This document shows, in pieces, positions 23,574 through 64,000 of a DNA stretch of 64,000 nucleotides. Every line of letters begins with the position of its first letter. The stretch's first letter is position 1. Position numbers and translations under genes: made by a program. Source of the DNA: Takakia lepidozioides (Eukaryota > Plantae > Bryophyta); contig CM060732.1 in assembly GCA_030704615.1 (NCBI GenBank), positions 70,618,001 through 70,682,000 on the forward strand. Reading direction: 5' to 3'. Under the pieces are notes generated by a model that was given only the letters and a program-made list of their open reading frames with translations, ran no database searches and had not been told where the DNA came from.

Positions 23574-23849
23574 GACATAAAAAGCTTGCGGAACAACTCC
23601 TGTGTAAAAACAATGCAAACAAAGAATCCAAAAGGCATTTAATAATTGTGCACAACTCATATATTTACAAAAGTTTGGAATGGTATATGGCTGGCCAAAA
23701 CGAAAGTGTGGGGAGAGACACCGCACTGCTCAATTTATTATTTCATATTGAGCTGAATGTTACATACATGGCCTACATTTAGATCTACGTTATTTTTTTT
23801 ATCTAGTATATGTACATTTACATTTTCAAAATACAAAAACTACCTAGCA

Positions 23850-30980: not shown

Positions 30981-33497
30981 TCAGACCTCGTCAGTGAATT
31001 TGTATGCTACCATGGCATCAACTTGATGCACCTGCACACACATCCAGTGGACAACATGAGGCAGCAAACATAACCACTAAGGCATGTGAATGCTTAGGGG
31101 CTAGCAAAACAACATTACCATCAGAATCAGTGCATAACACAGTTAGTCTTCAGGTCCTAGAAGCCAGTTTCACCAAGCAGACCTGCTATCAGAATAGTCA
31201 GAAGCAACAAAAGAATCAAGAGTACCTTGGTGTCTATTGAGCGGAGCTTCACCACTTGGGGGTTGGTAATCATGCGTGGATCACTTTCCCCCCACATGGG
31301 AGGCACTTTGGAGTCCAGGGATGTATACGCCAGCAGATCAAACGTGCATGCTTCTTCAAGATGGGGGAGAAATGTGACGCTAGAAGCAATCTGCCTCATG
31401 ATGGCCTGAATATCCGTCATGATCTCCTTGTCTGGCTTCTCTTTTGTTACCCTGCAATGTTTTTAATGTTATCATCTCTTGCCTAATGACAGTGGAAGGA
31501 ACAAACATGTGCACAAGCTTACAAATCTGTAGGTAAATAAGCTTCTTACTTTCGCCTTCAGAGTTGGTATAAGAGGGCAACAGTATTTCTAAGCTAAACC
31601 ATTTGAACCCCTAAACTGATCAAGAAGGTTCAGGGTAGCCTAGAAATTCTATACTCCCGTGCTAGAATCTCCTGTGTGTGAATTCACACTCACTCCAGGT
31701 TAAGTGCTTACCCCTTCTCAACTACTTCCCGGTCTGTCTCGATGTTGAAATTCCACCGTTCAAGAACCTCCTTGGTGGAAGTACTTGCTATGACCAGAAC
31801 GACTCTCTGCAGATTTCCTGTCTCCAGCCAGTCTACACAATACAGGACAGTTCACAAACTTAAGGCTCTTAAAAGAACTGAAATGTGGAATGAAAGGAAA
31901 ATAACGTCCGCAGAAAGCTCAAAGAGCTTATGGGAAAAAGGGAAAGCAAGAAACAACAAACAATGAAAGACAAAGAGCGAAGGAGAAAAGGAAGAAAGGA
32001 AATGAAATGAAATGAAATGGTACTTTATAACGTCCGCGGAAAGCTCAAAGAGCTTATAGCACAAAATGGAAAAAACAAGAGAGAGGAACAAAAACCGCAA
32101 AAAGCAGCCCAAAAGCAACACCTGCTCAAGGGATTGCTAAGGGTCAAGGCCTCGTGCAGGTAAGCTGCCAAGCATATCTGATCCTCATAATGGAAGACTT
32201 CAGTGAGAGATTGAGTTCCACGGAGTAGACAGTGGAATCTCCCACGGATCTCATAATACAGAGGGCAATAAAAGAAGTGTTCTTCAGTTTCAATTTCCTG
32301 GTTTGCGCCCGGTGCAAGCTGGGCATAGGCGGTCCTCGCGTTGCAGGTTTTCGCATCTACCAGTCTCTATCTGTAGATTGTGGGAGCCCACCCTGAATCG
32401 CCCCAATGCCCTCAGGAGGGAAGGAGATAAAGGCACTGAAAGGTATAGGTAATTGGGCCGCAAGATTCTATCATCACGGAGAACGTCTCTTGATAGAAAT
32501 GGAGTTTTGTTGTGAGATTGGGTAGCTTCCAAGTTCTCCTGACATGTAGTTCCATAAGTTCTCTTCTAATGAGTCTGTTGCAATCCTGTTTGGATGTGAT
32601 TTCCATCCCTTCTGGATTTTGTGGCAATAGCGAAGCAATAGAGGCAATAGAAAGGAAGAAATGTATTACTTTCATAGGAACTCAAAAGGGCCCAAGGGAC
32701 AAGTAGAACAACATAGGAAAACCCAAATCTTGAACCTTGCAAAAAGGTGGAGTACAGGTAAGCCGCCAATGTCCTCATAGCTAGAGACAGGAAGAGAAAT
32801 GAAATGAAATGGTACTTTATAAGAGAGAGAGACAGAGAGACAGTCTCACCTGCAAGCTGGGCTGTGACAGTGTCAACGAAGGTTTTCACCTTCTCTTGTT
32901 GGCAAAGAAGCATAGTCATCCCATACTTCTTCACACGTGCAAATTCATCTGTAGGATAAATTCCCCGCTGGAACAGAATGCTACAATCCAACAGATAATT
33001 TTTGTAAGATCCTACATGGGATATGGTGATGGCGAGTAAAACAAACAATGAAGAATGGACAATTTATGATAGAAAGAGATGCTCATAGAAACGAGTTGAA
33101 GTCTGTTCTGTTGACCTGTTGACCGAGTAGCCTGCAAATGGAACAATCCCCAAGAGTCTATTAGCTGAATGGGTTAACCACCCTATAATCCTGGCAGTCT
33201 ATAATAGGTGAAAACATCCAAGAACTCTGAATTGAACTCTACTGATGTAGATGATCCTCCTCTATAGCTGGCTTCAGCATTGCTAGGGGCTGTCGAGCGG
33301 TTGCACTGAGATAATGTCAAACACACTTCATGAAAACACCCACAGTTTCGAAACCATCACTTCCGTTACACTGGATGGGATTACCTACAGTGATCAAACC
33401 AGAAAGACAGGTTAGGAATCGTACAGAAGAACTCGCTGACTATGGCTGCAGACCCTTTAAGCGTGATGAAATCCCTTGTCAGCTGTGCTGTGCCCAT
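30981..33497 (-). CDS. MAD2: Mitotic spindle checkpoint protein MAD2 (HORMA domain), 205 aa; exons 33425-33497, 33116-33131, 32850-32980, 31712-31832, 31226-31451, 30981-31031
   Basis: ITLKGSAAIVSEFFCYSVNSILFQRGIYP..KKYG..EVLERWNFNIETD..IQAIMRQIASSVTFLP..FDLLAYT..QVVKLRSIDTKVHQVDAMVAYK. The exons total 618 nt in frame with GT-AG introns. Confidence 0.96.
31880..32690 (-). mobile_element. 3' fragment of a second LINE family (RTE/RTEX-like) ending in (CATTT)n, plus an extra tail copy, in MAD2 intron 3
   Basis: LGRFRVGSHNLQIETGR..RLCPAC zinc-knuckle-like region, then a 3' end gagctttccgcggacgttataaagtaccatttcatttc. The same tail recurs at about 32800, 35700, 42000-42095, 47060-47320, 51860-51965 and 60865-61045. 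Confidence 0.8.
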
Positions 33498-34749: not shown

Positions 34750-37700
34750 AGATGGCTGTCCGGCACAAGAAAGAGTCTATGAAATTCGGCGGGACCTGTC
34801 AGCAGGCCCTGGCGGACAAAACGAAAATTAGTCCAAGCTGATTGTTGCCCACCTGCATTCGAGACTTGCAAGCAAAGCTGTAGGAGGGCATAGAGCAGAG
34901 GTTATGGCGACCAAGCTGAGCTGAAAGGAAACTGATCGGGACGTGATGTTTTACTAGGGGATCCTGTCAGCTCAAATTGGCAGGCGCTGGCTATTTTGTT
35001 TCTAGTCTGTTTGCAGAACAGATAGCGCTTCTGTGAGAACCACGCAAACTGGCGGCTCATGTGAAGGGGTTGGACGTTGGTACTGTCTTCGCTGAGCAGC
35101 TGCTTAGGCAGAGCTTACATCAACACCACCCAGTATGCCGCACTATGAGAACGAGGATGCGGAATGCGAAGTATGGCCGCCGATGGTCCTGATAGATGTA
35201 GTAGAGAACATGGATACCACACCTGAGTGCCTTCGTGACCTTGAGGTGAACATGAAGAAACTGGATTTGGAGTTTTGTCCCGAACGACTTCACGAATTTG
35301 AAGGAAAGCATGGTTGGACATCTTTGTTATACATTTTTCCACCTTTGGGTAGCTCATATGTCGACGCTAAGAGCTTGGAACGGAATTGGGAATCCATAGA
35401 GCCCAAAAGTTGCACGGCCAGAGGTTGGGGGGCGATTGCCACAAGTTGGAAGGCAATTGCCGCGACAACGTGTTCTTATGCAAAGGTAGCAGACATGAAT
35501 GAGATCGACCCAGCCAAGCAGATTGTGAAGGGATGGGTACCCCTGACGACCTCCAAAAGCCTAGATCTGAGCTCATTTCAGTTTTCAACCTTTGCCGTTT
35601 ACATGGTTTGTGGATATCTCTCTCACACACACTTCGCTCTTGGGACATTGCAAATATTTTCCCTCTTTCCTGTTTCATTTCATTTCCTCTTGTACCATTG
35701 AGCTTCCCGCGGACGTTATAAGCGTTTCATTCTTGATTATCTCTTTCTCTCTATGGGTGCTTTAGAGGCAATGCTGCTCAGATGGAACGGACTTGAGATT
35801 TATAATCATACGTGGGCATGATTGTGGCTAACGTGTCAACTTCCAGGGTCAAGCTGGATATCAAATTCCAACTCAACCATCTGCATATGAAACACAAATC
35901 AGATTCCCATCTAATGCCAGAGTGACAGATCTATGTAAAAGAATCGAGGAAGCCCGGGACTCTGTGCTGGAGAGTATAGCGGTCACCGAGGGGCACCATT
36001 ATGATCGTGTTAGAAGCGTGAGTAGCTATTACTCCAGGGTCAAAAAGTTTGTTTGGTCTTAATCTGAATATAAGTCTGGGAAATTTTTTGTGAGAGGGCA
36101 TACCAGAATTATATTCCCAACTGCTTCTTTCAGGGGCATTTTGATGTCCGCACATGTTTGAGATGACAAGTTTTTGAACTGGAGACTGGATACTGTTGAT
36201 CACTGTGTAATGATATTGTAATTGGTGGATCACCACTAACCCTACAGTGTTGCCCTTGTTTTATACAAGTAAGTAATGGTTGGAATGCATGTAATGCTGT
36301 TGACTGTAGGTGAAGCACATTCTATCTGGTTGGAGGTATAAAATCAGCTCTTTCATGGAGGACCACATGACGCGGATGATGTGGCTGCAGCAACTATGGG
36401 CCCCCTGTCGTAAACTCCGTGCAACTGAGTATGAGGAGCGCACTCATATAATGCCGCATGGTGTTGAGGGAGGCTTACTCTCAAAAATGTAGGTGAAATG
36501 TGTGCCACTCCTTGTACTATTTCTCCCACTACCAGACCCTACTGCACCCACATTTATGCATTCATAGCCACAATAGCTGGATATGGTAAAGTCAAGGCAA
36601 AGAGCTTCTTTGGGAAAATCTGGAATGCACCAGAGTTAAATTTCGTTTTTGGTATTAGTTCACCATTGGAATGTCCCTTTCCACTATGGCAGTGAGCCCC
36701 ACCCTTCTTTATCTCTGCTGCTGTCCACTGTCTCCCCGTTTTTTTCTGCTCCTTGCAACACAGGCTCTTAGTACTGTGGCAAGCAATGTCAAAGTAACAG
36801 TATCTTTCTCCCTCCGCCCCTGGATTTGGTAAATGCCTTATTTGTTCTGTTATTGAGTTTATAAGCTCAATGGTGGTTCATATACCTAGAGCAATGAAAC
36901 TCCAGAAGCTTTGAGATCAAAAGCAACCCATTTTGCAGATGTTGCACATCTTTCCTGATGTAGCTTCTGGAGACCTGGTTTCTGGCAGTTTTCCTTCATG
37001 GCTAGTAGTTTTCCTTTGCTTTACATGTATTGGACCTGGACAGTAGCAGTGGCAGCATGGTCATGGTGGCTCACATATGCTATCTACCAAGACCCAGACA
37101 ATTTCAGGTCTTCACAGATTTCAATCTCCTGGGGACAATCTAAGATCCTCTTTCTGTGTCTGTTGGTGTTAATCATGTCTCAAGGACCCAAATATCCCTG
37201 AAGATGTAGTTTCAGCACTGGAACTCTATCACTGCAGCTAGCAGGCATATTTTATACGAGAAAGAGAGGAACATTTTCTTTTTTCAAGTGAAAGAGAGAT
37301 CTGGCCAAATGAGAACTTCAAGATTCTATCAATGGTATCTCACAGGATAAGTTTGGCTAGAGAAAAGGAGTTGGACGCACTGGAGGTCATGGTAATATGG
37401 GAGAGTGAACTTGCTACAGCCGTGAAATTGGAACTAGACAAATGTCATCAAGAATTCTGCTTATTACTACAGACATCTATGCAGCAATATGAGAAGGATC
37501 TAATGAAGGTTAGCCTTTTCTCTCTCTATCTTCCAAATTTCATGCTATCTATACATGTGTTTTCTAGGCAGGAATACATGATCTTGATTCCTTCATGTGG
37601 ATTAGTGGTGGGTCCTGTTGCTGAAAGGTATTGGTGGTTTGTCAGCACCTACTGAATTGGCGACAAAAACGAGAGTCCATCTTGGAGCAAAGGGTGAATG

Positions 37701-39617
37701 AAAGGATGGAGTTGGTGGAGCACACTGAAGTCGCCCAGAAAGAGACACTCATGCTTGAAAGTATGATGTCCATAGAAGCTACTGTCGGGGTGATGAAAAA
37801 GGTAAACCGCTTTTTGAGCCAAAGCACTAGCAATCACCTTTCTATTCACTTGTCACTCTCACTGAATGGTCTCTTTGGTGCTGAGAGTGGGTAGACCCTT
37901 GAGGTCATCCATGATATCCTCCCCCATGTCACAGACTGGAAACAGGTTCAGGGAAGTTTTCTGCCTAACTTCATTTGCATCAGACAATTTTCTGGTAACA
38001 GACATGGCTTTGGACACTACAGTCTCTAAGTCAGATTTATCCAGCAAGGTCAAGACTTGCGGGTCCAGATTCAGATCCTTGAGAATCTCTTCTACTTCTG
38101 CCAGGACTTAGCCTGTTTGACAGGGCAGTCCTGTTTCCAAGATATAGAGTCGATTAACTTAGGGTATCTGGTGTTGGACATGTGTTGCAACTGACCCCAC
38201 CATCTGACCTTGAATTCATCTTGTCGGGAGCTTAAGGAAGGGATGCCAAACTCACCCCGAACAGCCACATTGGCTGTTTTGGAGCATGCTGACATGCACT
38301 CCTTAAGCACCCCCACTTGAATGGATTCTAGAGACTTAGCCTGGTTGGAGTTATCAACCCATATAGCAGATCCGTACTTGAAGGCAGGTATAATAACGCG
38401 GAAAGCAAGGTTTTCTTGACCTCAGAGTTAGACTGAAATTTAAACTCAGGGCAGGAAGCCTACCTTTGAACAGTAAACAGAAGCAGAGAGGAAAGGGAGA
38501 GTGCAATTGCCCGTTGTGTGGGCAACCCGAAGACAATATTCATTTTCTGATTCACTGTCCGGGGTACTCTCACCAGAGAGAAGCTCTCCTCCAATCTATC
38601 AAGAGAATTGTGCCTGTACCCCTGTTTACCAACTTTGAAAGTCTCGAGGCTGAGCCAAAAGCCCAGGCCCTTCTGAGGCCTAGTTTTTGGGCAAATTACA
38701 CACAGCAGATTGATGCTTGTGTGAAGGGATCTCTAGAGGATATCTGGAAAACCCAAATCAATTCTATGTATAAAGGTAAGTCTTACTACCAATGTCAGCC
38801 CCTGACAGAGGTAGGTTCTGTCCCTTTGGTTTCCGCTCAAACTGGGCGCGGGGTCAATGGCTACAAGGCTACGGCAAACAACGTCTTATGAGTACATTCT
38901 TTGGTGAGTATCAGGGTTCCATTGCAGTGACAGCAATGCAAGCTTCAGTGTGGAGCACTCAGTAATTATTGCAACACTCTTTGCTTTATAAGTGACTTGG
39001 GTGGCCTCTTCCAAAAGGCTTTCAATACAAGTGCCGAGAGGCATTTTGACCACTGAGGGTGTTGGACAAGGTTCTGTCTTATAGATAACATTGTAGAGAC
39101 TATATGATGTCACAAATCTTAGGTGATGCCTTCTCTAGTTTTATCTCACGAAGCTTAGATTGTTCAATCCCTTGTCTTCAAAATTTTGATGGTCATATGG
39201 ATTTTTGAGTATTTGTTGGATCTGTTCCAGATCGAGGATGCCTCCAGATTAGAGAAGGAGGGCATGGAGAAGTTATTGAGAGAGAAAGAGGACAAGGAGA
39301 AGCACCTCCAGATGAAGGCGGAGGCATTACAAAGAGAGCTTCAAGAGGCAAGACAAACACTACAGGAGCTTGAGCATAGTATACAGGAAGAATCTGAGTG
39401 CGCAGTTTGTGCTCAAGAAATGGAAGGCATCAAAGGGACTCGGAAAAGGCGGTTGAATAACTCGGGTGTTGAGCCAGCTCGAAAGAGAGTGTGTTTCAAA
39501 CCGTGCAACCATGCCGGGGTGTGTGATGAGTGTGCCAGCAATATTTGGACCCGCACTCAGAAATGCCCGCTGTGCAACACCCAACTCACTGAGAAGCCAA
39601 CTGCCATTTTCTTGTGA
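34750..39617 (+). pseudogene. XS-domain / coiled-coil / C3HC4 RING gene, copy A (XS ~35135-35570; middle exons ~35770-36490; coiled-coil exons ending 37508 and 37646-37801; RING exon 39231-39617)
   Basis: VWPPMVLI..HG..LLYIF..SYVDAKSLER..W..SYAKVADM parallels the SGS3 XS domain. The last exon carries CAVC..CFKPCNHAGVCDECA..CPLC. In-frame stops occur upstream of XS and in the middle exon. Confidence 0.7.
37881..38897 (+). mobile_element. 5'-inverted (twin-primed) LINE insertion with 9-bp TSD, in an intron of XS-RING copy A
   Basis: TSD TCTTTGGTG at 37872-37880 and 38898-38906. 37881-~38400 is antisense and ~38420-38897 is sense. Empty sites are visible in the paralogues (~48531 and ~63927). 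Confidence 0.92.
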
Positions 39618-40044
39618 CTATCACCACACTGACGCACCAACAAAACTACATTTGGGCACACGGTAAGATGGCGCACACTAGGTGCGTTCCATTTTAATGG
39701 TCTGAAGCTTTTGAAGAAATGAAATGAAATGAAATAGAGGAACGGCTGCATTTATTTTGTGATCAAGTTCTTTGAAGGTTCCCGCCTTCCCAATCTCATT
39801 AGAAGTATTCAACACTAATGAGCTCAGTCAGCAGCCCATCAGGCTTGGTAAAACAAAAACTTTCGATTTGTGTAACTTTGCAATTGTGATTGCCATCAAA
39901 TGTAGGCAACAAATTATCAGATCATTTGATCTACACGAAGTTGATTCGATAGTTTTACCCTGTTGGATTTGAGCTGAAACATGATTGTTATTCAATGCTG
40001 GGGTTTGAGTTGTTGTTATGGTTTGTGATTATGATTGTACTCTT

Positions 40045-42630
40045 GATCCATGACCTTGTGGTACATTTCAGTACTAGAGATGATACAATTCCCCTGCACT
40101 ATCAAAATACCGAAACATATTCTTCTAATATGTGTGTTTGCAATTTGAGTCTCACTTAGCTGGTAGCTGCTAAATCTAATTTACAACTTTTCTGGTCCAG
40201 TGCTTTGCTGCCAATGTGGTCTGGCCATACCAGAAGCAGCAGGTCTTGTCCACCCCATTGGTGGGGTTGGGAATGTAGAGGGAGATGAGCTCCTCTGCAA
40301 AAGAGGCCTAATCACTTACCTTAGAGCTTACCTCCACACATAAAGATTAGAAGGAACCATTTTGGTACTCCAAGCCACATTGGTCAGAACCTCAGTCAAT
40401 ATGCGAAGCAAATGAGCTCTGAATGGGAGAGTGCATTAACTGCTTTTACCAATGACCTACATGAGAGAACACACCCTTAGCAGTGTTGCCAATAAATGGA
40501 GGCCAGCTGAAACATCATAAAAGATTCCAGGCTACAGCAAGTTACCGCCACTAACCGCGTTATACAATTGGGAAAGATTGGTAGAGTTGAATTCACGATT
40601 GTGTGTTAGCAATCTCGTAAACATTGAGATGCTTTTTCTGTAGAAAAGGTGATGTCCACAGGTCAGGATAGTATGTGTAACAATGGACATGCCAAGCCCT
40701 CCAATTTTCATCGTAACAGATTGGAATTGGTGATAATGGTCCCACTTCCCAATTTGAACTCTCTAGCTCACAGGGAGTGCAACGCATCTCCAATGAAAGA
40801 TATCCATCAAACAAGATCAAGTTCACTAAGGTCCAGGTCAGGAACTCTAAAGGTAGTTAATTCGGTCTGGGCCTACGTAGGGGAGCTGCATTGTCACCCA
40901 CCAATATCTATCGGCCATGGGTTTGACGTGCTATTCTACCCATTGGACAGGCTTACAGATTTTGAATATGCCTCCCCAACCAAACAACAAACTCTCTGCT
41001 TCCTGCAGAACAGCCTAGTCCCAAACAGTCGTCACATTATGCTGCAAACTTGCCCCTCAGCAGCAGTGGCCCAACTCACCTAGTGTTAGCTTTGAAGACC
41101 CCCAGTGCTTGGTGCAGAGCTGGTTTCTTGTTGTTCTGCTTTGTCCCATGGGCCCCCTCTGGACATTAGAGGTTTCTTGCTTGCTTTCTTCCTTCTTTCC
41201 TATGTGTTTTTCTAAGTAAGTATGAACCCTCAATATGCCGATTAGGCATAGTGATTAATAAGAACAACTGTATGGTCAGAAACCTGACAGTCCCAGTGAT
41301 GAAGTTATGATAGAAAGTTCCTTATGGGAAGGCAGGCAAAAAATATGGCACATCTACAAACTAAAAGTACTAGTTCAGTAAGTCAGTCTGTTTCTCTGGG
41401 GCAGGTATGAAGGCGTAGGAACAAGAGGCAAAGACAACTATTTGAAGATTGAGTGACGGACTACACACATATAACTACCTGAGGAGCACCAACCAATACA
41501 TGCCATGCTTCCAGCTTGATTCTTTCCCAGAAGCCAAGGTCCTCTGAGGATGCCAATTTCCCCGTATATGTCGGTGCTGTATGTTGATGGTGCCTTTGAG
41601 TGGATACTGTAGTGGTTTTCCGCTGTTGCCCCTGGCCTGTGAACTAGGCCTTTTATAGAGTTGAAGATGCCCAATTAGAAAGATATGAAGATTTTCATGT
41701 CCCGGCAAACTTCCACCAATTTCCTGTATTATTTTTGTCATTTTGACCTTATCATCATGAGGTCACGTTTAGATTACAAATTAACAGAAACTTTGTGAAA
41801 TAGGTACCCTCCATGACCCTGTGCGCAGAGCTGAGGCAAATGGGATATTGCAACATGTGAATTTGGAAGATCATGATGTAGAGGTTCTTCACATTCTTGC
41901 TCTCCCCCGCTTTGAGAGACTTTGTTTTTGTGGGGGAGGATATAGCTCCTTTCTCTTTGCGCTCCTTGAGCAGTAGTTGCTTTTGGACTGCTTTTTGGTT
42001 CTGGTTTTGTCTCATCTCTCTTGTTTTTTCCCATTTTGTCCCATAAGGTCTTTAAGCTTTCTGCGGACATTATAAAGTACCATTTCATTTTATTTCTTTG
42101 CGTGTTTGCCAAGTTTACCTGAAAGATGACAAGTTTGCTGCACGCCCTGATTCCCTAGTCTTCTTTTAAATAAAATCGGAGTAATGGTCACAACAAAGAG
42201 AACTGGTATGACTAGGACCACGCTCCAATGGAGATATAGAGTGCCCTAGCAGGCGGTCATGTGCTTTCCTGCAAGTCTGAGAGATTGAATTCAAATGGAG
42301 GTCCAGTGTATCAAAAGTCCCATAAACTACATAAAGTGTGCGCAGGAAAATGAGAAAAAGATCTGAGCCACTTGTCGTTGACTTTCAGGTCACAGCGGCT
42401 GTCCAAAGGCTTAGGGAGGTCCAACCATATTTTCATGTGAGACAAGTGACGTGTGATCTCCTGATGTCTGGGTCAGACTCATTTTGGGGCATATTACAGA
42501 CTCAATCATACCGTGCCCAAGCATGTTTGACGAAAATGAAGAGAAGGTGGGTACCAACATCATGGCCGACTCCAAAGAAGATGGAGAGAAGGTAGAAGTG
42601 ATCGTGTTACAGGATCTGGATTGAGGACTC
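40045..42630. pseudogene. Second copy of the MinE-like relic, with 40045-41712 inverted relative to the other copies
   Basis: 40045-41712 is the reverse complement of about 49910-51550. 41715-42630 is colinear with about 51590-52615 and 28760-29640. Confidence 0.8.
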
Positions 42631-45470
42631 AGAAGCAGTTCTGGTTATAAACTTCAAAACCAATCCGTGAATTGGATTAATGGTGGATGAGGGTCCCACC
42701 TCAATTGAAGGGGATACGTCACTACCCACCTCGGAGGTGTTGCTCGGCTTCTTGCTTCCCTCAAAGGTTTGCATACCACCCTCTGCCTCAACCCCTTTCT
42801 CTTTCCCCACATCATGAGCATGAGTCCCACCATCTATGGGGTCCGAATCAGCATTTACAGTCACCTTCATTGCAGCCCCCTCTTTCTCCCCTGCAGCCTT
42901 CCCCCCACTTACACTCTCCTTCTGCACTTGTGGCAACTCAGCGCTTTCCCCACCCCCTCCTGGCAACACCTCACGGTTAGATAGAATGGTGTCAGGAGGG
43001 GGCTCTTTGCTACTTGAGCCAGGGAGAACTTGTTGTTGCATGGATGTCATGAGTTCCAGAAGTTGTGCCAACTGCTTCTCCATTTCAGGGAGTTTCTGAA
43101 TTGTTTTCTCCATGTCTTGCGTTTTTGACATTTGCCTCTCGATGGCTGTGATGCGTGATGCCAAAGAACTGCCGCCTCCCTGTGCATACAGAAAAGAGCA
43201 TTAGTCATCTCACCTCTTTCAACTCTACACCTACCTCAACTTGCACCCTACCCAAATTCTGTTTGTGCAAATGGATGGAGAGGGCTGGGAAGGATGCAAG
43301 TGCAAATACCCGGCACATGGTGGCCTCCGAAGGTGCTTCCCCATCATTGTTTGGCTCCTGCCCAAGTTCAGATAGAGAGTGGTCGCGGCTTTTCTGTTTT
43401 TTCTGCACATTTGTATTTTCCCACAACGTGGCAAATATGAGCCCTCAACATGTAGCCAGAACCAGCTCCTAACTAGGACCTTACATACAAGGCTTGCCGT
43501 GGATGAGGTGTGGTACTTGGGTCCTATGTCATGTGGCAATCACACACAAATGAAGGCAAAACAAGAAAGTGCCACAAGGCCAAAAAAGGTAAACAGCAAA
43601 CAGACACACAAACCATATCTGACAGCTTTAGTAGTGGCTTGGGAAACAGCTGCCTTGTGCTTACCAACCGGGCTGCTTGGCCAGCAACACCTGCGCGACC
43701 CCAACGTGAGGGATTTGTGACACAAGCACGGGCTTGCTTCATACTTTCAGTCTTGGCCACTCCTGTTGGGGACTCCCAGTACTCCACAAGGCGATCCCAA
43801 TATGCAGGTTTGGTGTTCACAGGTCTAACTCCCTTCCCCTTCCATATTTCCTTCAGTCTTGCACGCTCACCCTTCATTATCTTTGCACTCGCCCTAGCTA
43901 CAAACTCTCGACTCACAGGGTGGGGATAGTACTCATAGGTCTCGTTCAGCATGTCCACCACTGTTGTGATGGCCACTGCATCTTGCATATCAACATTCTG
44001 CAGACTTGGATCACAGAACGTAAGTGCCAGACTACGCAAGTCTCGCTGCCAATGGTCCTTACCTTCACTCCCCGCATCTATTTTTCCAAGGGTTGTTACC
44101 TCCACCTTGTGGCGCTTCAGACCTTCTGCCACCCTTGCATCCCCCTTGGTTTCCCATGTCTTAAGGGTGCGCCGGCGTGCACGCCTCAACTGTGTGGCGC
44201 GGCTGGGCTGTGGACCATCCTCATCATAACCATAATCACGAGTGGGGGGCGGCCATTGCGAAGGCCCTTGGGAAGATGCAGGCTGCCATGTCCATTGTAG
44301 TTCAAATTTCAGTCTAGTTCCGAGAGTGGGTAGACCCTTCAGGTCATCCATGATGGCCTCCCCCATGTCACAGACTGGAAACAAGTTCAGGGAAGTTTTC
44401 TGCTTAACTTCATTTTCATCAGACAATTTCCTGGCAACAGACATGGCTTTGGACACTACAGCCTCTAAGGCAGATTTAACCAGCAGGGTCAAGACTTGCG
44501 GGCTAATATTCAGATCCTTGAGAATCTCTAGAAGACTCTCTTCCGCCAGGACTTAGCCTGTTTGACAGGGCAATCCTGTTTCCAACATATAGAGTCGATT
44601 AACTTAGGAAATCTGATGTTGGAAATATGTTGCAGCTGACCCACCACCTGACCTTGAATTCATCTCGTCGAGAGCTTAACGAAGGGATGCCAAACTCACC
44701 CCGAACAGCCACATTGGCTGTTTTGGAGTATGATGACATACTCCTTAAGCACCCCAACTCTAATCGACTCTAGAGACTTAGCCTGGTTGGAGTTTTCAAC
44801 CCATATTGCAAATGCGTACTCGACCAAGGCGGGTCTAATAACGGGACAAAGTTGACTTGACCTCAGAGTTGATCCCTCTGCAGTGGAAAATTTAGTGAGA
44901 CCCAGCGCTTTGCGCTTGCCAGTTTGAACAACTTTCTGAATATGTGCATCCTAATTACAGTTCGAGGAAAACTCAACGCCGAGGTGTCTGTAGGAGGGAG
45001 GACCGAAATCTCTTGGCTTCCCCACTGCCACTTGAGATCATCCCCTCCCTCTACTCGGTCCTTGAATGCCACCACTGCACATTTACTGACATTAGCCTCT
45101 AGCCCCCAAAGGTCAAAGTATCTCTTCGCGCAATCAATCAACTCATGGAGATCGGAAGGAGTCTCCCCTATGCCTGCGATACCTGGAAAGCCTGAACTAC
45201 TTGATTATACCAATGTATGTCACACTACCGGATAGAGCCCTTCACACAGGTTTGAGGGTTCTTTGGATACGAGTCACCTGTGCAAGTGCGGGGCCTTTGT
45301 GGCGTTTCCTCGACATGCCTTCAAGAGGTGGACTGGCACCTTCCGCGCTGCTCCCCTCCTTTTCCTTGCACCTTCCACGCTGCTCTCCTCCTCTGCCTCT
45401 TCCTTGCCTGGTGTGTCGTCCGAGGTGTTGGACTTGGAGCATGTCCGCAGCCCAAAAGGTAGGGAGTGTG
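42607..45470 (-). mobile_element. CACTA TnpA-like (plant transposase Ptta/En/Spm, Transposase_24-type) gene, copy A, interrupted by a LINE
   Basis: RPVNTKPAYWDRLVEYWESP..KTESMKQARACVTNPSRWGRAG matches the W..LV.YW.S...K..R......G pattern. A coiled-coil C-terminal exon lies at 42607-43180 and an acidic/NLS-like 5' piece at 45240-45470. Confidence 0.65.
44297..45190 (-). mobile_element. LINE fragment (same family as 7700-9052)
   Basis: IDCAKRYFDLWGLEANVSKCAVV..KTANVAVRGEFG..LPTLGTRLKFEL. Confidence 0.85.
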
Positions 45471-46199
45471 TGCTCCTTACAATGGGGACGGAAGGAGCTG
45501 AAGAATGACTTGTAGCAGGCCAAAACCCACGAAATATGAAGTGGGACCCCAAAGCAAGGAGAGGCAAAGTACAGCAGCAGAACACTTACAGAAACAGGAA
45601 CTCTGCTGAACAATGTGGAAAATGCGGGGAGTGTGGGGCTCCTTCACAATGGGCACACTGACTACTTGGCCCAGCTGCATGCATGGAGACTGTAGAGAAA
45701 ACCACAGTAGATTGAAAGGGGAGGAAATGACACTGTTCAGCACGCGAAGTCGCATGCAACCAAATCCATCCGTTCATTTCGAAAAAAACATCCACGTGTA
45801 ACAAATCCGAGGTCGTGAACATGACGACTTGAAGTTGACTGGTGATCCACATTGCTGAGCAACGTCAAGAGTTGAAGGTGTAGGGGTGGTGTAGGTCACT
45901 GCAAGCAACATTGCACCACAAGAATTGTAAATGATGAAGGCTGCTGTGTCACAGAGGCAAGGCACATTTGGCCGTCCAGCATCCATTGCAGATAAGACAT
46001 TCACTAGATAATGCATTTAGTGCTATATGTACTTGAACGAATGAACCTTGTCCATAAGCATTTATGGGCCGCCCTTGAGCGAAACTGCTCAGTGCTAGCT
46101 TGTACATCTTGTAGAGCATCGCAGATGATCAGGATTCATCTCAAGTCTGAGGATGTGTTGGGCAACTTTGGGGAGCTTCGGTGCTTTTGAAAGACCTGG

Positions 46200-49100
46200 C
46201 GGACAAAACTAATATTAGTCCAAGCTGATCGTTGCCCACCTGCATTCGAGACTTGCAAGCAAAGCTGTAGGAGGGCATAGAGCAGAGGTCATGGGGACAT
46301 CGGGACCAAGCTGAGCTGAAAGGAAACTGATCGGGACGTGATGTTGTACTAGGGGATCCTGTCGGCTCAATTTGGCAGCTGGCTATTTTGTTTCTAGTCT
46401 GCGTGCAGAACAGATAGCGCTTCTGTGAGAACCACGCAAACTGGCGGCTAATGTGAAGGGGTTGGACGTTGGTACTCTCTTCGCTGAGCAGCTATTTAAA
46501 GTGTGGCAGAGCTTACATCAACACCATCCAGTACTGCCGCACTATGACAACAAGGATGCGGCATGCGAAGTATGGCCGCCGATGGTCCTGATAGATCCAG
46601 TAAAGTATATTGGGGATATCACAGCTGAGTGCCTTGAGGGGAACTTGAAGAATCTGGATTTGGAGTTTTGTCCCGAACGACTTCACGAACTTGAAGGAAA
46701 GCTTGGTTGGAAATATTTGTTATACGTGTTCCCACCTTTGGGTAGCTCATATGTCGACGCTAAGAGCTTGGAACGGAATTGGGAATCCGTAGAGCCCAAT
46801 AGTTGCACGGCCACAAGTTCGGAGGCGATTGCCCTGACAAGGTGTTCTTATGCAACGGTAGCAGACATGAATATGATCGACCCAGCCAAGCAGATTGTGA
46901 AGGGATGGGCACCCCTGACGACCTCCAAAAGCCCAGATCTAAGCTCATTTCATTCTTCAGCCTTTGCCGTTTACATGGTTTGTGAATATCTCGCTCACAC
47001 GCACTTCGCCCTTGGGACATTGCAAACATTTTCCCTCTTTTCTCTCCCTCTCTCTCTCATGTTCATGTTTTCTTCCATTTTGTCCCATAAGCTCTATGAG
47101 CTTTCCGCGGACGTTATAAAGCACCATTTCATTTCATTTCATTTCTCTCTTCCACTATGAGGATAAAAAATGCTTGGGAGCTTACCTGCACGAGGCCTTC
47201 ACCCTTAGACAATCCCTCGAGCAATAGTTTTATTTTTGGCTCTGGTTTTGTTTCCACTCATGTTTTCTACCATTTTCTCCATGAGCTTTCCGCGGACGTT
47301 ACAAAGCACCATTTCATTTCTGGATTTGGTAAATGCCTTATTTGTTCTTTTATTGAGTTTATAAGCTCAATGGTGGGTCATATACCTAGAGCAATGAAAC
47401 TCCCGAAGCTTTGAGATGTCCCATTTTGCATGATGTTGCACATCTTTCCTGCTGTAGCTGCTGGAGACCTGGTTTCTAGCAGTTTTCCTTCATGACTAGT
47501 AGTTTTCCTTCACTCTACATGTATTGGACCTGGAGTAGCAGTGGCAGCATGGTCATGGTCGCTCACATATGCTATCTACCAAGACCCAGATAATTTTCAG
47601 GTCTTCACAGATTTCAATCTACTGGGGACGACCTAAGATCCTATTTCTGTGTCTCTTGGTGTTAATCATCTCAGCGACCCAAACATCCCTGAAGATGTAG
47701 TTTCAGCACTGGGAACTCACTGCAGCTAGCAGGCATTTTTATACGAGAAAGAGAGGAACATTTTCTATTTTCAAGTGAAAGAGAGATCTGGCCAAATGTG
47801 ATGTTCAAGATTCTATCAATGGTATCTCACAGGATAAGGTCGGCTAAAGAAAAGGAGATGGACGCACTGGAGGTCATGGTAATACTGGAGAGTGAACTTG
47901 CTACAGCTGAGCAATTGGAACTAGATAAATGTCATGAAGAATTCTGGTTATCACTAAAGACATCTATGCGGCAATGTAAGAAGGATGTAATGAAGGTTAG
48001 CCTTTTCTCTCTCTATCTTCCATATTTCATGCTATCGTGTGTTTTCCAGGCAAGAATACATGATCTTGATTCCTTCATGTGGGGGTCCTTTTGTAAATGT
48101 CATCACGAATTCTGGTTACTACTACAGACATGTATGCAGCAATATGAGGAGGATCTAATGAAGGTTAGCATTTTCTCTCTCTATCTTTCAATTTTCATGC
48201 TATCTATACATGTGCTTTCCAGGCAGGAATACATGATCTTGATTCCTTCATGTGGATTAGTGGTGGGTCCTGTTGCTGAAAGGTATTGGTGGTTTGTCAG
48301 CTCCTACTGAATTGGCAACAAAAACAAGAGTGATCCATCTTGGAGCAAAGGGTGAATGAAAGGATGCAGTTGGTGGAGCACACTGAAGTTGCCGAGAAAG
48401 AGACACTCATGCTTGAAAGTATGATGTCCATAGAAGCTACTGTCGGGGTGATGAAAGAGGTGAACCGCTTTTTTTGAGCTAAAGCATTAACAATCACCTT
48501 TCTATTCACTTGTCACTCTCACTGAATGGTCTCTTTGGTGAGTATCAGGTTTCCATTGCAGTGACAGCAATGCAAGCTTCAGTGTGGGTGCACTCAGTTA
48601 TTATTGCAACACTCTTTGCATCACAAGTGACTTGGGTGGCCTCTACCGAAGGCTTTTAATGCAAGTGCCAAAAGACATGTAAACCACATGGGGTTGTTGG
48701 ACAAGGTTCTATCTTATATATAATATTGTAGAGAATGTATGATGTCACAAGTCTTAGGTGATGCCTTCTCTAGTTTTATCTCACGAAGCTAAGATTGTTG
48801 AATCCCTTGTCTTCAAAATTTTGATGGTCAAATGGTTTTTGGAGTATTTGTTGGATTTGTTGCAGATCGAGAATGTCACCAGATCAGAGAAGGAGGACAT
48901 GGAGAAGAAGTACAAAATGGAAGTGGCTAGGCTATTGAGAGAGAGAAAGAGGACATGGAGAAGCACCACAAAACAGAAGCGGCGAGGGCATTGAGAGAAA
49001 AAGAGGACATGGAGAAGCACCACAAAATGGAAGAATTGACGGTAGTGAGAGAATTGAGAGTGACAATGTACAGGGAGATGAAGAACAAAATGGAAGGGGA

Positions 49101-49446
49101 GAGGTTATTGAAAGAGAAAGAGGACATGTAGAAGCACCACCAAATGAAGGAGACATTACAAAGAGAGCTTCAGGAGGCAAGGCAAACACTGCACGAGCTT
49201 GAGCAAAGTATACAGGAAGAATCCGAGTGCGCAGTTTGTGCTCGAGAAATGGAAGGCATCAAGGGGACTCGGAAAAGGCCATTGAGTAACTTTGGTGTTG
49301 AGCCAGCTCGAAAGAGAGTGTGTTTTAAACCGTGCAACCATGCCGGGGTGTGTGATGAGTGTGCCATCAATATTTGGACCCGTACTCAGAAATGCCCGTT
49401 GTGCAACACCCAACTCACTGAGAAGCCAACTGCCATTTTTTTGTGA
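46200..49446 (+). pseudogene. XS / coiled-coil / RING gene, copy B (middle exons deleted; frameshift and stop in the coiled-coil exons)
   Basis: XS ORF 46453-~46950 (EVWPPMVLIDP..SYVDAKSLERNWE). RING ORF 49144-49446. gagtgatcc insertion at ~48330 and TAG at ~49128. Confidence 0.7.
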
Positions 49447-49904
49447 CTATCACCACACTGAAGCACCAACAAAACTACATTTGGGCACAATGTAGGATGG
49501 CACACACTAGGTTGGTTCCATTTTAATTTTTTCTGAAGCTTTTGAAGAAAGAGAGGAACAACTTCATTTATTTTGTTATCAAGTTCATTGAAGGTTTCCG
49601 CATTCCCAATCTTATTAGAAGTATTCAACACTAATGAGCTCGGTTAGCAGCCAATCAGGCTTGATAAAACAAAAACTTTAGAATTGTGTAACTTTGCGAT
49701 TGTGATTGCCATCAAATGTAGGCAACAAATTATCAGATCATTTGATCTACACAAAATTGATTAGATGGAGTAGTTTTGCCCTGTTGGATTTGAGTTGAAA
49801 CACGATTATTATGCAATGCTGAGGTATGGAGTTCTTATTATGGTTTGTGATGATGATTGTACTCTGAAGTTCAGTTTAGAAATAGGTACATGACAGCCAT
49901 GATT

Positions 49905-52615: not shown

Positions 52616-52619
52616 AGCA

Positions 52620-55600: not shown

Positions 55601-55800
55601 CTGTGCAAGTGTGGGGCCTCTGTGGCGTTTCCTCGACATGCCTTCAATGCCGCCCCGATGTGGACTGGCACCTTCCACGCTGCTCCTCTCCTCTGCCTCA
55701 CCTTCCGCCCTGCTCCCCTCCTCTGCCTCTTCCTTGCCTGGTGTGTAGTCCGAGGTGTTGGACTTGGAGCATGTCCGCTGGCCAAAAGGTGGGGAGTGTG
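52620..55800 (-). mobile_element. CACTA TnpA-like gene, copy B, with jumbled LINE fragments at about 54440-55530
   Basis: ORF 53460-54374 carries YWDRLVEYWESP..KQARACVTNPSRWGRA. The LINE pieces occur in both orientations and include an RT motif VQSNIGVKQGCPLSP at about 55130-55175. Confidence 0.65.
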
Positions 55801-56365
55801 TGCTCCTTACAATGGGGACGGAAGGAGCTGAAGAATGACTTGTAGCAGGCCAAAACCCACGAAATATGACGTGGGACCCCAAAGCAAGGAGAGGCAAAGT
55901 TCAGCAGCAGAACACTTACAGAAACAGCGACTCTGCTGAACTATGTGGGAACTGTGAGGAGTGTGGTGAGTGTGGGGCTCCTGGCACACTGACTACTTGG
56001 CCCAGCTGCATGCATGGAGACTGTAGAGAAAACCACAGAAGATTGAAATGGGAGGAAATGACACTGTTCAATTCGCGTAGTCGCATGCAACCAAATCCAT
56101 CCGTTCATTTCGAAAAAACATTCCACGTGTAACAAATCCGAGGTCGTGAATATGACGACTTAAAGTTGACAGATCACACGGTCGGTATGTAATCACCCTG
56201 GTTGAATGTTAGGGGAGTAGAATTTACACTAACAGGGTTGAAATGATTGAATGAAGTCGCCTTCGTATATGTAACAGTAAATACTCATGGATAAAGGTAA
56301 GGTTTGTTTGTTTGAATTTATAGAGCCTATGCTCGCACATAACATAACATAGGTAACCTTGAACG

Positions 56366-59989: not shown

Positions 59990-61051
59990 TGTTCCTTTGC
60001 CACAGTACTTAGCATAAATGTGGGTGCAGTAGGGTCTGGTAGTGGGAGAAATAGTACAAGGAGTGGCACATTTCACCTACATTTTTGAGAGAGTGTCTCC
60101 CTCAACACCATGGGAGAAATAGTACAAGGAGTGGCACATTTCACCTACATTTTTGAGAGAGTGTCTCCCTCAACACCATGCAGCATTATATGAGTGCGCT
60201 CCTCATAGTCAGTTGCACGGAGGTTGCGACAGGGGGCCCATAATTGCTGGAGCCACATCATCCGCATCATGTCGTCCTCCAGGAAAGAGATTTTATCCCT
60301 CCATCGAGATAGAATGCGCTTCACCTACAGTCAACAACATTACAAGCATTACTTGTATAACAAGGGCAACACTGTAGGGTTAGTGGTGATCCAACAATTA
60401 CAATATCATTACACAGTGATCAACAGGTATTCAGTCTCCAGTTCAAAAACTTGTCATCTCAAACCTGTGCGGACATTAAAATACCCCGAATGAAGCAGTT
60501 GAGAATATTATACTGGCGTGTCCTCTCACTAATATTTCCCAGGCTTATATTTTAGATTAAGACCAAACAAGAGAACATTAACCCTGGAGTAATAGCTACT
60601 CACTCCTCCAACACGACGATAATGGTGCACATCGTTAACCCCGCTCCTCTCCAGCACAGAGTCCCGGGCTTCTCGATTCTCTTACATAGATCTGACACTC
60701 TGGGATTAGATGGGAATGTGATTTGATCTGCAGATGATTGAGTTGGAATTTGATATCCAGCTTGACCCTGCAAGTTGACACGTTACCCATAAGCATGCCC
60801 AAGTATGATCATAAATCTCAAGTCCGTCCCATCTAAGCAGCATTGCCTCTAGAGCGCCCATAGAGAAATGAAATGGTCTGGTACTTTGTAAAGTGCGCGG
60901 AAAGCTCATAGAGCTTATGGGACAAAATGGAAGAAAACATGAGAGAGCAAACAAAACCAGAGCCAAAAGTAAAACTATTGCTCGAGGGACTGTCAAAGGG
61001 TGAAGGCCTCGTGCAGGTAAGCTCCCAAGCATTTCTGATCCTCATAGTGGA

Positions 61052-61083
<32 letters not shown>

Positions 61084-62393
61084 AAATGTTTGCAATGTCC
61101 CAAGGGCGAAGTGCGTGTGAAAGAGATATTCACAAACCATGTAAACGGCAAAGGCTGAAGAATGAAATGAGCTTTGATCTAGGCTTTTGGAGGTCGTCAG
61201 GGGTGCCCATCCCTTCACAATCTGCCTGGCTGGGTCGGTCTCATTCATGTCTGCTACCTTTGCATAAGAACACCTTGTCCCGGCAATCGCCTCCGAACGT
61301 GTGGCCGTGCAACTTTTCGGCTCTACGGATTCCCAATTCCGTTCCAAGCTCTTAGCGTCGACATATGAGCTATCCAAAGATGGGAACACGTATAACAAAT
61401 ATTTCCAACCAAGCTTTCCTCCAAATTCGTGAAGTCGGTCGGGATAAAACTCCAAATCCAGATTCTTCAAGTTCACCTTAAGGTCACGAAGGCACTCAGC
61501 TGTGATGTCCAGAGACGCTACTGGATCTGTGATATCCACATACGCTACTGGATCTATCAGGACCATCGGCGGCCATACTTCGCATTCCGCATCCTTGTTG
61601 TCATAGTGCGGCATACTGGATGGTGTTGATGTAAACTCTGCCACACTTTAAGCAGCTGCTCAGCGAAGACAGTACCAACGTCCAACCCCTTCACATGAGC
61701 CGCAAGTTTGCGTGGTTATCACAGAAGCGCTATCTGTTCTGCAAACAGACTAGAAACAAAATAGCCAGCGCCTGCCAATTTGAGCTGACAGGTAACCCTA
61801 GTAAAACAACACGTCCCGATCAGTTTCCTTTCAGCTCAGCTTGGTCCCGATGTCCCCATAAACATCTGCTCTATGCCCTCCCACGGCTTTGCTTGCAAGT
61901 CTCGAATGAGGTCGGCAACGATCAGCTTGGCCTATGTCATATGATTCGTTGTGTCCGCCGCCCGAATTTCATAAACTCCTTCTGCCAGACAGCCGCTCTG
62001 CTTTAGCCGGAGCTTTTCGCAAGACAGTGCAGCATGCAAACTGGCAAAACCGCAAATGGCATCGCAGTTGGGCCATGTCACAGGAGCAGCTGAACCCTCC
62101 CCAATCAGCTGCTTTCCATCCATCTACACACATTCATCCACTACGGGCAAAACTTTATTATACATCCAAGTACTTGGGTTCATACATCCATTGAGAGTCC
62201 CATGGACTACGAGGAGATAGATGACGTCCATCGATTCACAGGGATGAAAACTGAATGGATGTGTCCCTACGGATGATAAAGTGAGCTCATCCCTAACGAA
62301 GCCTGTGCAGCGAGTACAATCCTTTCCCACTTTTTTCATCCTCTCTTGGCGCTCTTCCTTTCTTCTTGGTCCGCTTGTGAGAAAGGGGTCCAT
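59990..62393 (-). pseudogene. 5' half of XS-RING copy C, inverted (N-terminal region, XS and middle exons)
   Basis: Reverse complement of about 34770-36780. XS ORF 61042-61644. Upstream ORFs 62124-62393 and 61932-62123 are in the same frame, separated by TAG. Confidence 0.75.
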
Positions 62394-62898: not shown

Positions 62899-64000
62899 TT
62901 TGGTAAATGCCTTATTGTTCTTTTATTGAGTTTATAAGCTCAATGGTGGGTCATATACCTAGAGCAATGAAACTCCAGAAGCTTTGAGATGTCCCATTTT
63001 GCATGATGTTGCACATCTTTCCTGCTGTAGCTGCTGGAGACCTGGTTTCTAGCAGTTTTCCTTCATGACTAGTAGTTTTCCTTCACCCTGCATGTATTGG
63101 ACCTGGACAGTAGCAGTGGCAAGCATGGTCATGGTGGCACTTTTGCTATCTACCAAGACCCAGATAATTTCAGGTCTTCACAGATTTCAATCTCCTGGGT
63201 ATGATGATCTAAGATCCTCTTTCTGTGTCTCTTGGTGTTAATCATCTCAGGACCCAAACATCCCTGAAAATGTACCTTCAGCACTGGGAACTCTATCACT
63301 GCAGCTAGCAGGCATATTGATACGAGAAAGAAAGGAACATTTTCTATTTTCAAGTGAAAGAGAGATCTGGCCAAATGTGAAGTTCAAGATTCTATCAATG
63401 ATATCTCACAGGATAAGGTCGGCTAAAGAAAAGGAGATGGACGCACTGGAGGTCATGGTAATACGGGAGAGTGAACTTGCTACAGCCGAGCAATTGGAAC
63501 TAGATAAATGTCATCAAGAATTCTGGTTATTACTAAAGACATCTATGCGGCAATATAAGAAGGATGTGATGAAGGTTAGCCTTTTCTCTCTCTATCCTCC
63601 ATATTTCATGCTATCTATACATGTGTTTTCCAGGCAAGAATCCATGATCTTGATTCCTTCATGTGGGGGTCCTTTTGCTGAAAGGTATTGGTGGTTTGTC
63701 AGCTCCTACTGAATTGACGACAAAAACGAGAGTCCATCTTGGAGCAAAGGGTGAAGGGAAGGATGCAGTTGGTGGAGCACACCGAAGTTGCCAAGAAAGA
63801 GACACTCATGCTTGAAAGTATGATGTCCATAGAAGCTACTGTCAGGGTGATGAAAAAGGTGAACCGCTTATTGAGCTAAAGCACTAGCAATCATCTTTCT
63901 ATTCACTTGTCACTCTCACTGAATGGTCTCTTGGTGAGTATCAGGTTTCCATTGCAGTGACAGTAATGCAAGCTTCACTGTGGTGTAATTATTGCAACAC
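62899..64000 (+). pseudogene. 3' half of XS-RING copy C (coiled-coil exons); runs off the window end
   Basis: Colinear with about 36825-37880 and 47325-48600. TGA at about 63716 replaces TGG. Confidence 0.8.

Follow-up and report, generated by a model that had tools for sequence, protein, structure and literature searches.

The XS proteins SGS3, IDN2 and the FDMs, built from zf-XS, XS, a coiled coil and in some cases XH, have a central role in the amplification of plant siRNAs and in RNA-directed DNA methylation; none of them is known to possess a catalytic effector domain. The question raised by the present locus, located in a window of 64,000 nucleotides (the whole stretch of DNA that was analysed), is whether an XS domain has been combined with a coiled coil and a C-terminal RING, as an earlier note on this DNA had proposed, and whether any copy of the gene is still alive. 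On balance, one copy appears to be a live gene for a lineage-specific and rapidly evolving E3 ligase of the coiled-coil RING type, as predicted from its sequence, the N-terminal head of which is possibly XS-derived.

The exon with the EVWPPMVLID-type sequence is found three times, at 35135-35605 (+), 46534-46977 (+) and 61614-61138 (-), in what are designated here as copies A, B and C, respectively. The three exon copies reported earlier are all present, the LHEFEGKHGW string being exact in copy A alone (LHELEGKLGW in B and LHEFGGKLGW in C). Copy A extends over 35135-39617 (+) and comprises six exons for 508 codons, every exon being open, with the following features:

34856..35134 (+): 5' leader of copy A, with a GGSCEGVGRWY string and, between it and the ATG, two stop codons in frame
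35135..35605 (+): exon 1 of copy A (XS-like domain), open frame of 157 codons counted from the ATG, with the motifs EVWPPMVLID, EFCPERLHEF, GKHGWTSLLYIFPPLGSSYVDAKSLERNWE and CSYAKVADMNEID
35847..36017 (+): exon 2 of copy A, 57 codons, beginning and ending in phase 0
36310..36488 (+): exon 3 of copy A, 59 codons plus 2 nt, with a predicted 3' end
37346..37508 (+): exon 4 of copy A, helical, 1 nt plus 54 codons, with AG at 37344-45 and GT at 37509
37646..37801 (+): exon 5 of copy A, helical, 52 codons
37883..38898 (no strand assigned): high-copy repeat (retroelement fragment) within intron 5 of copy A
39231..39617 (+): exon 6 of copy A, heptad coiled coil followed by a C3HC4 RING and a stop codon

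The exon phases of copy A are compatible (0, 0, 2+1, 0 and 0), the continuity of the frame being judged by exon lengths and phases alone. Exons 1, 2, 3, 5 and 6 have exact RNA-derived contigs over them, which come from two studies, and a contig piece with 1 mismatch lies over 37346-37506 in exon 4. For exon 1, an exact contig covers 35366-35499, and the donor 35605|35606 (ATG|GTTTGT) is joined to 35847 in the spliced RNA contig of a paralog, which moves the end of this exon to 35605 from the KGW at 35536 where it had previously been placed. The joint between exons 2 and 3 is contained in a 321-nt contig (0-1 mismatch) passing from 35847-36017 to 36310-36459 over a GT..AG intron, and the acceptor of exon 3 is present in an RNA contig. 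The end of exon 3 was set at 36488 because the donor found there (AAT|GTAGGT) is the one from which reading continues into exon 4 without a stop, and the joint between exons 3 and 4 is thus a predicted one; use of the alternative donor at 36492|36493 would retain a TAG, with the protein ending after exon 3. As for the joint between exons 5 and 6, a 446-nt contig (0 mismatches, two runs) connects 37801 to 39231, GT..AG and in frame, its exon 5 part lying over 37659-37799 and aligning onward to 39229, which corresponds to 37801|39231 once the cut is shifted by +2. Exon 6 is further covered by exact RNA contigs over 39229-39533 and 39508-39625, while the RNA contigs listed include none for the joints between exons 3 and 4 or exons 4 and 5, nor for the span from the head to the RING. 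On the favoured reading, copy A is a live, transcribed six-exon nuclear plant gene with a predicted protein of about 508 residues. The earlier view that all copies are disrupted is right for copies B and C; it does not apply to copy A, the six exons of which are open and in phase and the transposon insert of which is intronic.

All profile and sequence searches of copy A were run exon by exon, on unjoined exons. At the C-terminus, the RING of exon 6 matches zf-C3HC4_3 (PF13920) with an E-value of 6.8e-10 and 39.0 bits, against a gathering cutoff of 27, and its eight ligands are all present in the C3HC4 order (C-x2-C-x28-C-x-H-x3-C-x2-C-x10-C-x2-C). The loop going from the first pair to the third ligand is unusually long, with 28 residues, and basic (KGTRKRR...ARKR), because of which the Pfam alignment is limited to profile positions 12-47. 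Such a RING would be expected to confer E3 ubiquitin ligase activity. Upstream, exon 6 exhibits a heptad contrast of 0.90, compared with 0.53±0.10 in shuffles, i.e. about 3.7 standard deviations higher, and exons 4-5 are almost without Pro or Gly and consist of E, K, R, Q, L, M and A for 63-65% (zero Pro/Gly and 65% in exon 4). By the composition of exons 4-5 and the heptads of exon 6, a coiled coil lies downstream of the head, as in SGS3/IDN2-like proteins. The in-phase splicing of helical exons to the RING that had been proposed is borne out in RNA for exons 5 and 6, and the proposed gene structure is to be completed with exons 2 and 3, which precede the helical exons. In none of the exons of copy A does Pfam match an XH domain, the C-terminus being the RING, and a word-index protein search, which covers proteins of similar length only, returned no relatives of the RING exon. 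Like other C-terminal zf-C3HC4_3 ligases with a coiled coil, copy A has its RING at the extreme C-terminus with heptads directly before it; it differs from them by the basic 28-residue loop and by its N-terminal domain.

At the other end of the gene, the string CGSCEGVGRWY of copy C (61704, -) had been thought to recall the start of a zf-XS. This candidate was rejected: the string belongs to the 5' leader, where two in-frame stops separate it from the ATG, and neither zf-XS nor any other Pfam family matches it. Its first residues read GGSC in copy A and GG*C in copy B, the first Cys being absent in both. Paralog RNA contigs run unbroken over 34856-35395 and 34856-35106 and, since the longer one is continuous into exon 1, no intron removes the stops of the leader.

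Regarding the head itself, exon 1 of copy A scores 15.7-17.2 bits against Pfam XS (PF03468), with E-values of 0.0065-0.019 and a gathering score of 25, the match extending over profile positions 5-81 of 113 and leaning partly on residues specific to copy A (GKHGW, for GKLGW in B and C). Exon 1 of copies B and C gives no Pfam XS match, even at E 10. From the profile comparison that had been suggested, with XS, zf-XS and zf-C3HC4_3, the RING emerges above its cutoff, XS below its own and zf-XS not at all; of the claimed architecture, the succession of head, coiled coil and RING is upheld by the RNA contigs and the RING match, while the XS identity of the head is not established. A phmmer search run exhaustively against 1.84 billion representatives returned 0 matches for exon 1, and word-index protein searches, covering proteins of similar length only, returned nothing with exon 1 or, at E up to 10, with a three-copy profile. 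No SGS3 or IDN2 relative of exon 1 was found by phmmer, word-index or PDB sequence searches; the PDB searches, with profile and single sequence, recovered no solved XS-domain structure and a single chance-level match, TFG1 (E 1.2). The ESM Atlas feature search gave no usable match, and scanning metagenome loci with the alignment of the three copies revealed no relative. AlphaFold2 models of the full exon 1 and of the trimmed domain, made with the three-copy alignment, are of such low confidence (pLDDT 34 and 40, respectively) that they weigh neither for nor against an XS fold. Their elements come in the order beta-alpha-beta-(short helix)-beta-alpha, Foldseek places them weakly near ferredoxin-like/RNP-like domains, and the better model (pLDDT 40) has no PDB match at E <= 0.001, nor any XS-domain entry listed.

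These results bear on the alternative that survives best, namely a real coiled-coil RING ligase with an orphan head unrelated to XS, in which the shared motifs are due to chance and there is no link to RNA. This is possible, if somewhat unlikely. It accounts for an XS score that is sub-threshold, restricted to one of the three copies and partly due to A-specific residues, as well as for the lack of relatives in the sequence, PDB, ESM Atlas and metagenome searches. It fits less well with XS being the sole family touched by exon 1 among 24,736 Pfam families, with 77 profile positions in order, and with XS being a plant domain that usually has a coiled coil after it, as is the case here; in addition, SYAKVADMNE in exon 1 sits at what we take to be the place of the C-terminal XS motif. 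All in all, it appears about as likely as not that the head represents an XS domain that has diverged greatly.

Compared with the SGS3/IDN2/FDM proteins, copy A has a head with XS-like motifs in XS order and a long helical/coiled-coil region after it; it differs in being devoid of zf-XS and XH and in an XS score that is sub-threshold and found in one copy only, and no sequence search ties it to any member of the group. It also ends in a RING, a domain that does not appear in the SGS3/IDN2/FDM architectures as described in the part of the literature found (PMC3378875). IDN2 forms homodimers through its coiled coil and needs its XS domain to bind dsRNA with 5' overhangs (PMC3342958).

Returning to the favoured reading, that of a coiled-coil RING ligase with a possibly XS-derived head, the protein would comprise an alpha/beta head of about 135 residues with XS-like motifs, a linker of about 115 residues (exons 2-3), a helical stretch of about 170 residues in which a heptad coiled coil is evident and, finally, the C3HC4 RING. 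The coiled coil would permit dimerisation, an E2 loaded with ubiquitin would be brought in by the RING, and the choice of the ubiquitination target would fall to the variable head; should the head be a diverged XS, this target would be RNA-bound, that is an RNA or a protein on RNA. We hypothesise in this respect that the protein may sense RNA and, if the head is of the XS type, RNA recognition would be coupled directly to ubiquitination in some plants. A bolder version, which we consider unlikely, is that the head is a true, very fast-evolving XS and the array a set of lineage-specific, diversifying RNA-guided E3 ligases. The copies would then differ in the RNA structure or RNA-bound protein that they recognise (from a virus, a transposon or an siRNA precursor), and each would ubiquitinate its own target, which would constitute a direct link from the RNA-silencing toolkit to ubiquitin, without counterpart in flowering plants.

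The evolution of the copies informs on whether copy A encodes a useful protein. Copies B and C, the exon 1 of which shares 78% protein identity with that of copy A, are recent duplicates that are decaying now:

46534..49446 (+): copy B, pseudogene
46534-46977 (+): exon 1 of copy B, CTG in place of ATG
47144-47321: 195-bp repeat in copy B, a copy that lacks exons 2 and 3 by deletion
47833-47995 (+): exon 4 of copy B
47926-48082 and 48094-48255: tandem duplication in copy B
48301-48459 (+): exon 5 of copy B, TGA in frame
48866-49446 (+): exon 6 of copy B, with a 197-nt tandem expansion and a stop
60149..61614 (-): 5' half of copy C, with exon 1 at 61614-61138, exon 2 at 60767-60604 and exon 3 at 60324-60149
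63412..63858 (+): 3' half of copy C, with exon 4 at 63412-63574 and exon 5 at 63703-63858, the remainder being beyond the window edge

Copy B has thus lost its ATG and exons 2 and 3 and has acquired stops and a frameshift, while copy C has a 1-nt deletion in exon 2, a TGA in frame in exon 5 and two mutually inverted halves (5' half on the minus strand, 3' half on the plus strand). Among the copies, exon 1 shows three indels, of 3, 9 and 21 nt, all in frame, and between A and B the indels that are multiples of three amount to 5 out of 6 in exons and 5 out of 22 in non-coding DNA. Between copies, exon 1 has a dN of 0.10-0.12 and a dN/dS of 1.5-2.0, which, on small counts, is not significantly different from 1; on the copy A branch, omega is about 1, with 34 nonsynonymous and 8 synonymous changes. 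Non-coding divergence over the duplicated unit is 4.6-9.6%, a range that brackets the value of exon 1. Exon 1 has diverged between copies no more slowly than non-coding DNA, and thus gives no support to sequence constraint on the head; positive selection on the head was considered too and rejected as unproven, given the small counts and an exon 1 value within the non-coding range. A head that diverges as fast as non-coding DNA and yet stays in frame is a pattern typical of genetic-conflict genes.

The same rates could be read as an entire array that is dying, copy A included, the gene being transcribed and spliced without yielding a useful protein, for instance through the TAG-retaining donor of exon 3. 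We hold this to be quite unlikely. Two of the three copies are clearly dead, no signal of purifying selection is seen on the A branch, splicing at the alternative donor would retain a stop and the surroundings are rich in transposons; against this, copy A keeps 508 codons open over six exons where B and C accumulated several lesions each in equal time, most indels within exons preserve the frame, the RING retains 8 of 8 ligands and copy A is expressed in two studies. With copy A taken as a live ligase gene, the locus presents a head-helix-RING layout that is transcribed and correctly spliced inside a rapidly duplicating and decaying array.

The exon copies are included in a duplicated unit of about 11 kb, as seen by self-BLAST of the window, and the family sits in transposon-rich surroundings, within a tandem array that turns over fast. 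An ORF at 43524-44492, co-duplicated with the unit, faintly matches Transposase_24 (E 0.036). Exon 3 was examined as a Transposase-associated domain (Transpos_assoc, PF13963), which was rejected at 14.7 bits for a cutoff of 27.7 (E 0.036). It is highly improbable that a CACTA-type transposon captured part of a gene and multiplied it to give this unit, with exons 2-3 derived from the transposase-associated domain, so that the unit would be a chimeric passenger and not a host gene; the two faint matches and the ~11 kb size that would suggest it are set against scores under both cutoffs and copies arranged in tandem, in a segmental-duplication-like manner. The repeat within intron 5 of copy A is not at the corresponding place in copy B, according to self-BLAST. 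It has a faint zf-RVT match and a depth in the thousands, with further copies at 8064-9054, 44322-44870 and 54818-55058.

An exon encoding an XS-like N-terminal domain (hereafter the head) occurs in three copies, named A, B and C, each recovered in the window by motif and self-similarity searches:

35135-35605, plus strand: exon 1 (E1) of copy A, 157 codons starting at the first ATG past two in-frame stops
46534-46977, plus strand: exon 1 of copy B
61614-61138, minus strand: exon 1 of copy C

The observation made in the earlier note was largely right: this is a real gene, and copy A is intact. It is transcribed and spliced, and its last exon encodes a coiled coil and a complete RING. The remaining exons of copy A were placed as follows:

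35847-36017, plus strand: E2, 57 codons
36310-36488, plus strand: E3, 59 codons and 2 nt, with an inferred donor
37346-37508, plus strand: E4, 1 nt and 54 codons
37646-37801, plus strand: E5, 52 codons
39231-39617, plus strand: E6, 128 codons and the stop

When this model was checked exon by exon for frames and phases, the six exons were found open and all phases compatible, for a total of 508 codons. RNA evidence came from contigs of two public runs, belonging to two studies, aligned to 34800-40100; several contigs carry GT..AG joints, so spliced RNA is present in these runs. One 446-nt contig, found in both and free of mismatches, connects 37659-37801 with 39231-39533 (E5-E6) and leaves out 1429 bases, among which the high-copy repeat at 37883-38898. 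The E2-E3 joint, from 35847-36017 to 36310-36459, is given by a 321-nt contig with 0-1 mismatch, and the joint of exon 1 at 35605 with 35847 by a close paralog's contig with 8 mismatches; exact or near-exact contigs cover 35366-35499, 37346-37506 and 39508-39625; E3-E4 and E4-E5 joints were absent among the contigs listed for 34800-40100. The caveat that all copies look disrupted was consequently too pessimistic, since copy A is intact and its transposon is intronic and spliced out. The chief uncertainty of the model is the choice of the E3 donor, tentatively placed at 36488 (AAT/GTAGGT) because this choice keeps the frame open; an alternative donor 4 bases downstream would keep a TAG. Contigs from both runs also cover 36393-36569, over intron 3 of the model, at a depth of about 38; they lack 2 nt at 36499, as copy C does, and may reflect either transcription of this stretch by some paralog or occasional retention of intron 3.

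At the C-terminal end, exon 6 matches zf-C3HC4_3 (E 6.8e-10, 39 bits for a Pfam cutoff of 27) with 8/8 ligands, spaced C-x2-C-x28-C-x-H-x3-C-x2-C-x10-C-x2-C, the first loop being basic and unusually long. The 55 residues preceding the RING follow a strong heptad pattern (contrast of 0.90 vs 0.53±0.10 in shuffles). In E4 and E5, Pro and Gly are nearly absent and helix formers abundant, and no significant heptad signal emerged from the same test against shuffles. The proposed in-phase splicing into a C3HC4 RING exon is borne out by the spliced E5-E6 contig together with the profile match and the full set of ligands.

Regarding the head, Pfam XS is the only family matched by exon 1, over profile positions 5-81 of 113 (E 0.019, 0.015 or 0.0065 depending on trimming). 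The profile check nonetheless went against the XS assignment, copy A scoring 16-17 bits, well below the gathering score of 25, and copies B and C giving no match at all to Pfam XS; the match of copy A rests partly on residues specific to it. The exon-1 motifs come in XS order and are then followed by a coiled coil, as is the XS domain of SGS3 and IDN2 (PMC3342958). Exhaustive phmmer searching with exon 1 against 1.84 billion representatives returned nothing, and neither did word searches, PDB sequence searches, atlas searches or a metagenome scan. Both AlphaFold models of the head were too low in confidence (pLDDT 34 and 40) to test the fold; on the side of XS, they give the element order beta-alpha-beta-(short helix)-beta-alpha, and their weak structural neighbours are ferredoxin-like or RNP-like domains. 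Altogether, the chances for and against true XS ancestry of the head appear evenly balanced. As for the CGSCEG string said to recall the start of zf-XS, this reading was rejected: the string is part of the 5' leader and is separated from the ATG by two stops, its first Cys is missing in A and B, and it has no match in Pfam. In a paralog, RNA is continuous across this leader region.

Of the XS-RING ligase for RNA sensing put forward in the earlier note, the RING-ligase part is well supported, while the XS and RNA-sensing reading of the head is still a candidate. The protein would dimerise via its helical region, the RING of this putative ligase would recruit an E2, and the variable head may pick the target; for an XS-derived head, this would be RNA itself or a protein bound to RNA. 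The papers retrieved (PMC3378875, PMC3342958) give XS proteins no domains other than zf-XS, XS, coiled coil and XH, in varying combinations, and text searching found no paper describing XS combined with a RING.

Each copy forms part of a unit of roughly 11 kb that has been duplicated (A at 34808-45839 and B at 46195-56170 by self-similarity search), with DNA identities of 85-94% among copies and exon-1 proteins of B and C each 78% identical to that of A. Copy B has CTG at the position of the ATG of A and C, has lost the stretch carrying E2 and E3, whose place is occupied by a 195-bp repeat, and has E4 and its downstream intron partly duplicated in tandem; it also shows one TGA in E5, and a 197-nt tandem expansion and a stop in E6. 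The expanded unit (48907-49103) encodes an EKEDMEK-like coiled-coil repeat. Copy C has undergone an inversion, since its E1-E3 read from the minus strand and its E4-E5, 0.9 kb away, from the plus strand; E2 has a 1-nt deletion, E5 one TGA, and the 3' part falls beyond the window edge. Between copies, exon 1 has dN of 0.085-0.117 and dS of 0.043-0.071 (ratio 1.5-2.0). Positive selection on exon 1 cannot be claimed, because the non-coding parts of the unit themselves diverge by 4.6-9.6%, and the A branch (34 nonsynonymous and 8 synonymous changes) is not distinguishable from neutral. Within exons, most indels keep the frame (3/3 in exon 1; between A and B, 5/6 exonic against 5/22 non-coding are multiples of three), so for most of their history the copies preserved the reading frame with the sequence changing freely, as in a fast-evolving family whose copies are born and die.

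The sequence of the window is that of a eukaryote, with GT..AG introns and numerous pieces of transposons (a hAT ORF, a fragment of a retroelement and faint matches to CACTA); exon 3 itself faintly resembles a transposase-associated domain, below cutoff. The surrounding features are:

43524-44492 and 53460-54374, minus strand: ORFs of 322 and 304 codons, 95% identical, in the 3' half of each unit
37883-38898, 8064-9054, 44322-44870 and 54818-55058: high-copy repeat, covered in both runs by contigs with depths in the thousands
32004-32197, 47144-47321 and 60864-61058: 195-bp segment, in intron 1 of B and C and at a third site
21348-23726, minus strand: hAT-type ORF, 792 codons, C-terminal hAT-family dimerisation domain (E 3.4e-10)
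58494-59780, plus strand: kinase-domain ORF, 428 codons, Pkinase E 3.8e-11, between copies B and C
1997-3088, minus strand: ORF of 363 codons, adaptor-complex medium (mu) subunit family (E 1.9e-23)

The 95% identical ORFs, one of which faintly matches the plant Transposase_24 (CACTA) below cutoff (E 0.036), are probably transposon remnants copied along with the gene. The high-copy repeat, whose contigs contain many rearranged joints, appears to be a retroelement fragment, transcribed and very abundant, with a faint zf-RVT match. The 195-bp segment resembles a small mobile element; its third site, where it is in reverse orientation, lies 3 kb upstream of copy A. Judging from their domain matches, the 21348-23726 ORF is apparently an intact hAT transposase and the predicted mu-subunit ORF an ordinary host gene at the window edge.
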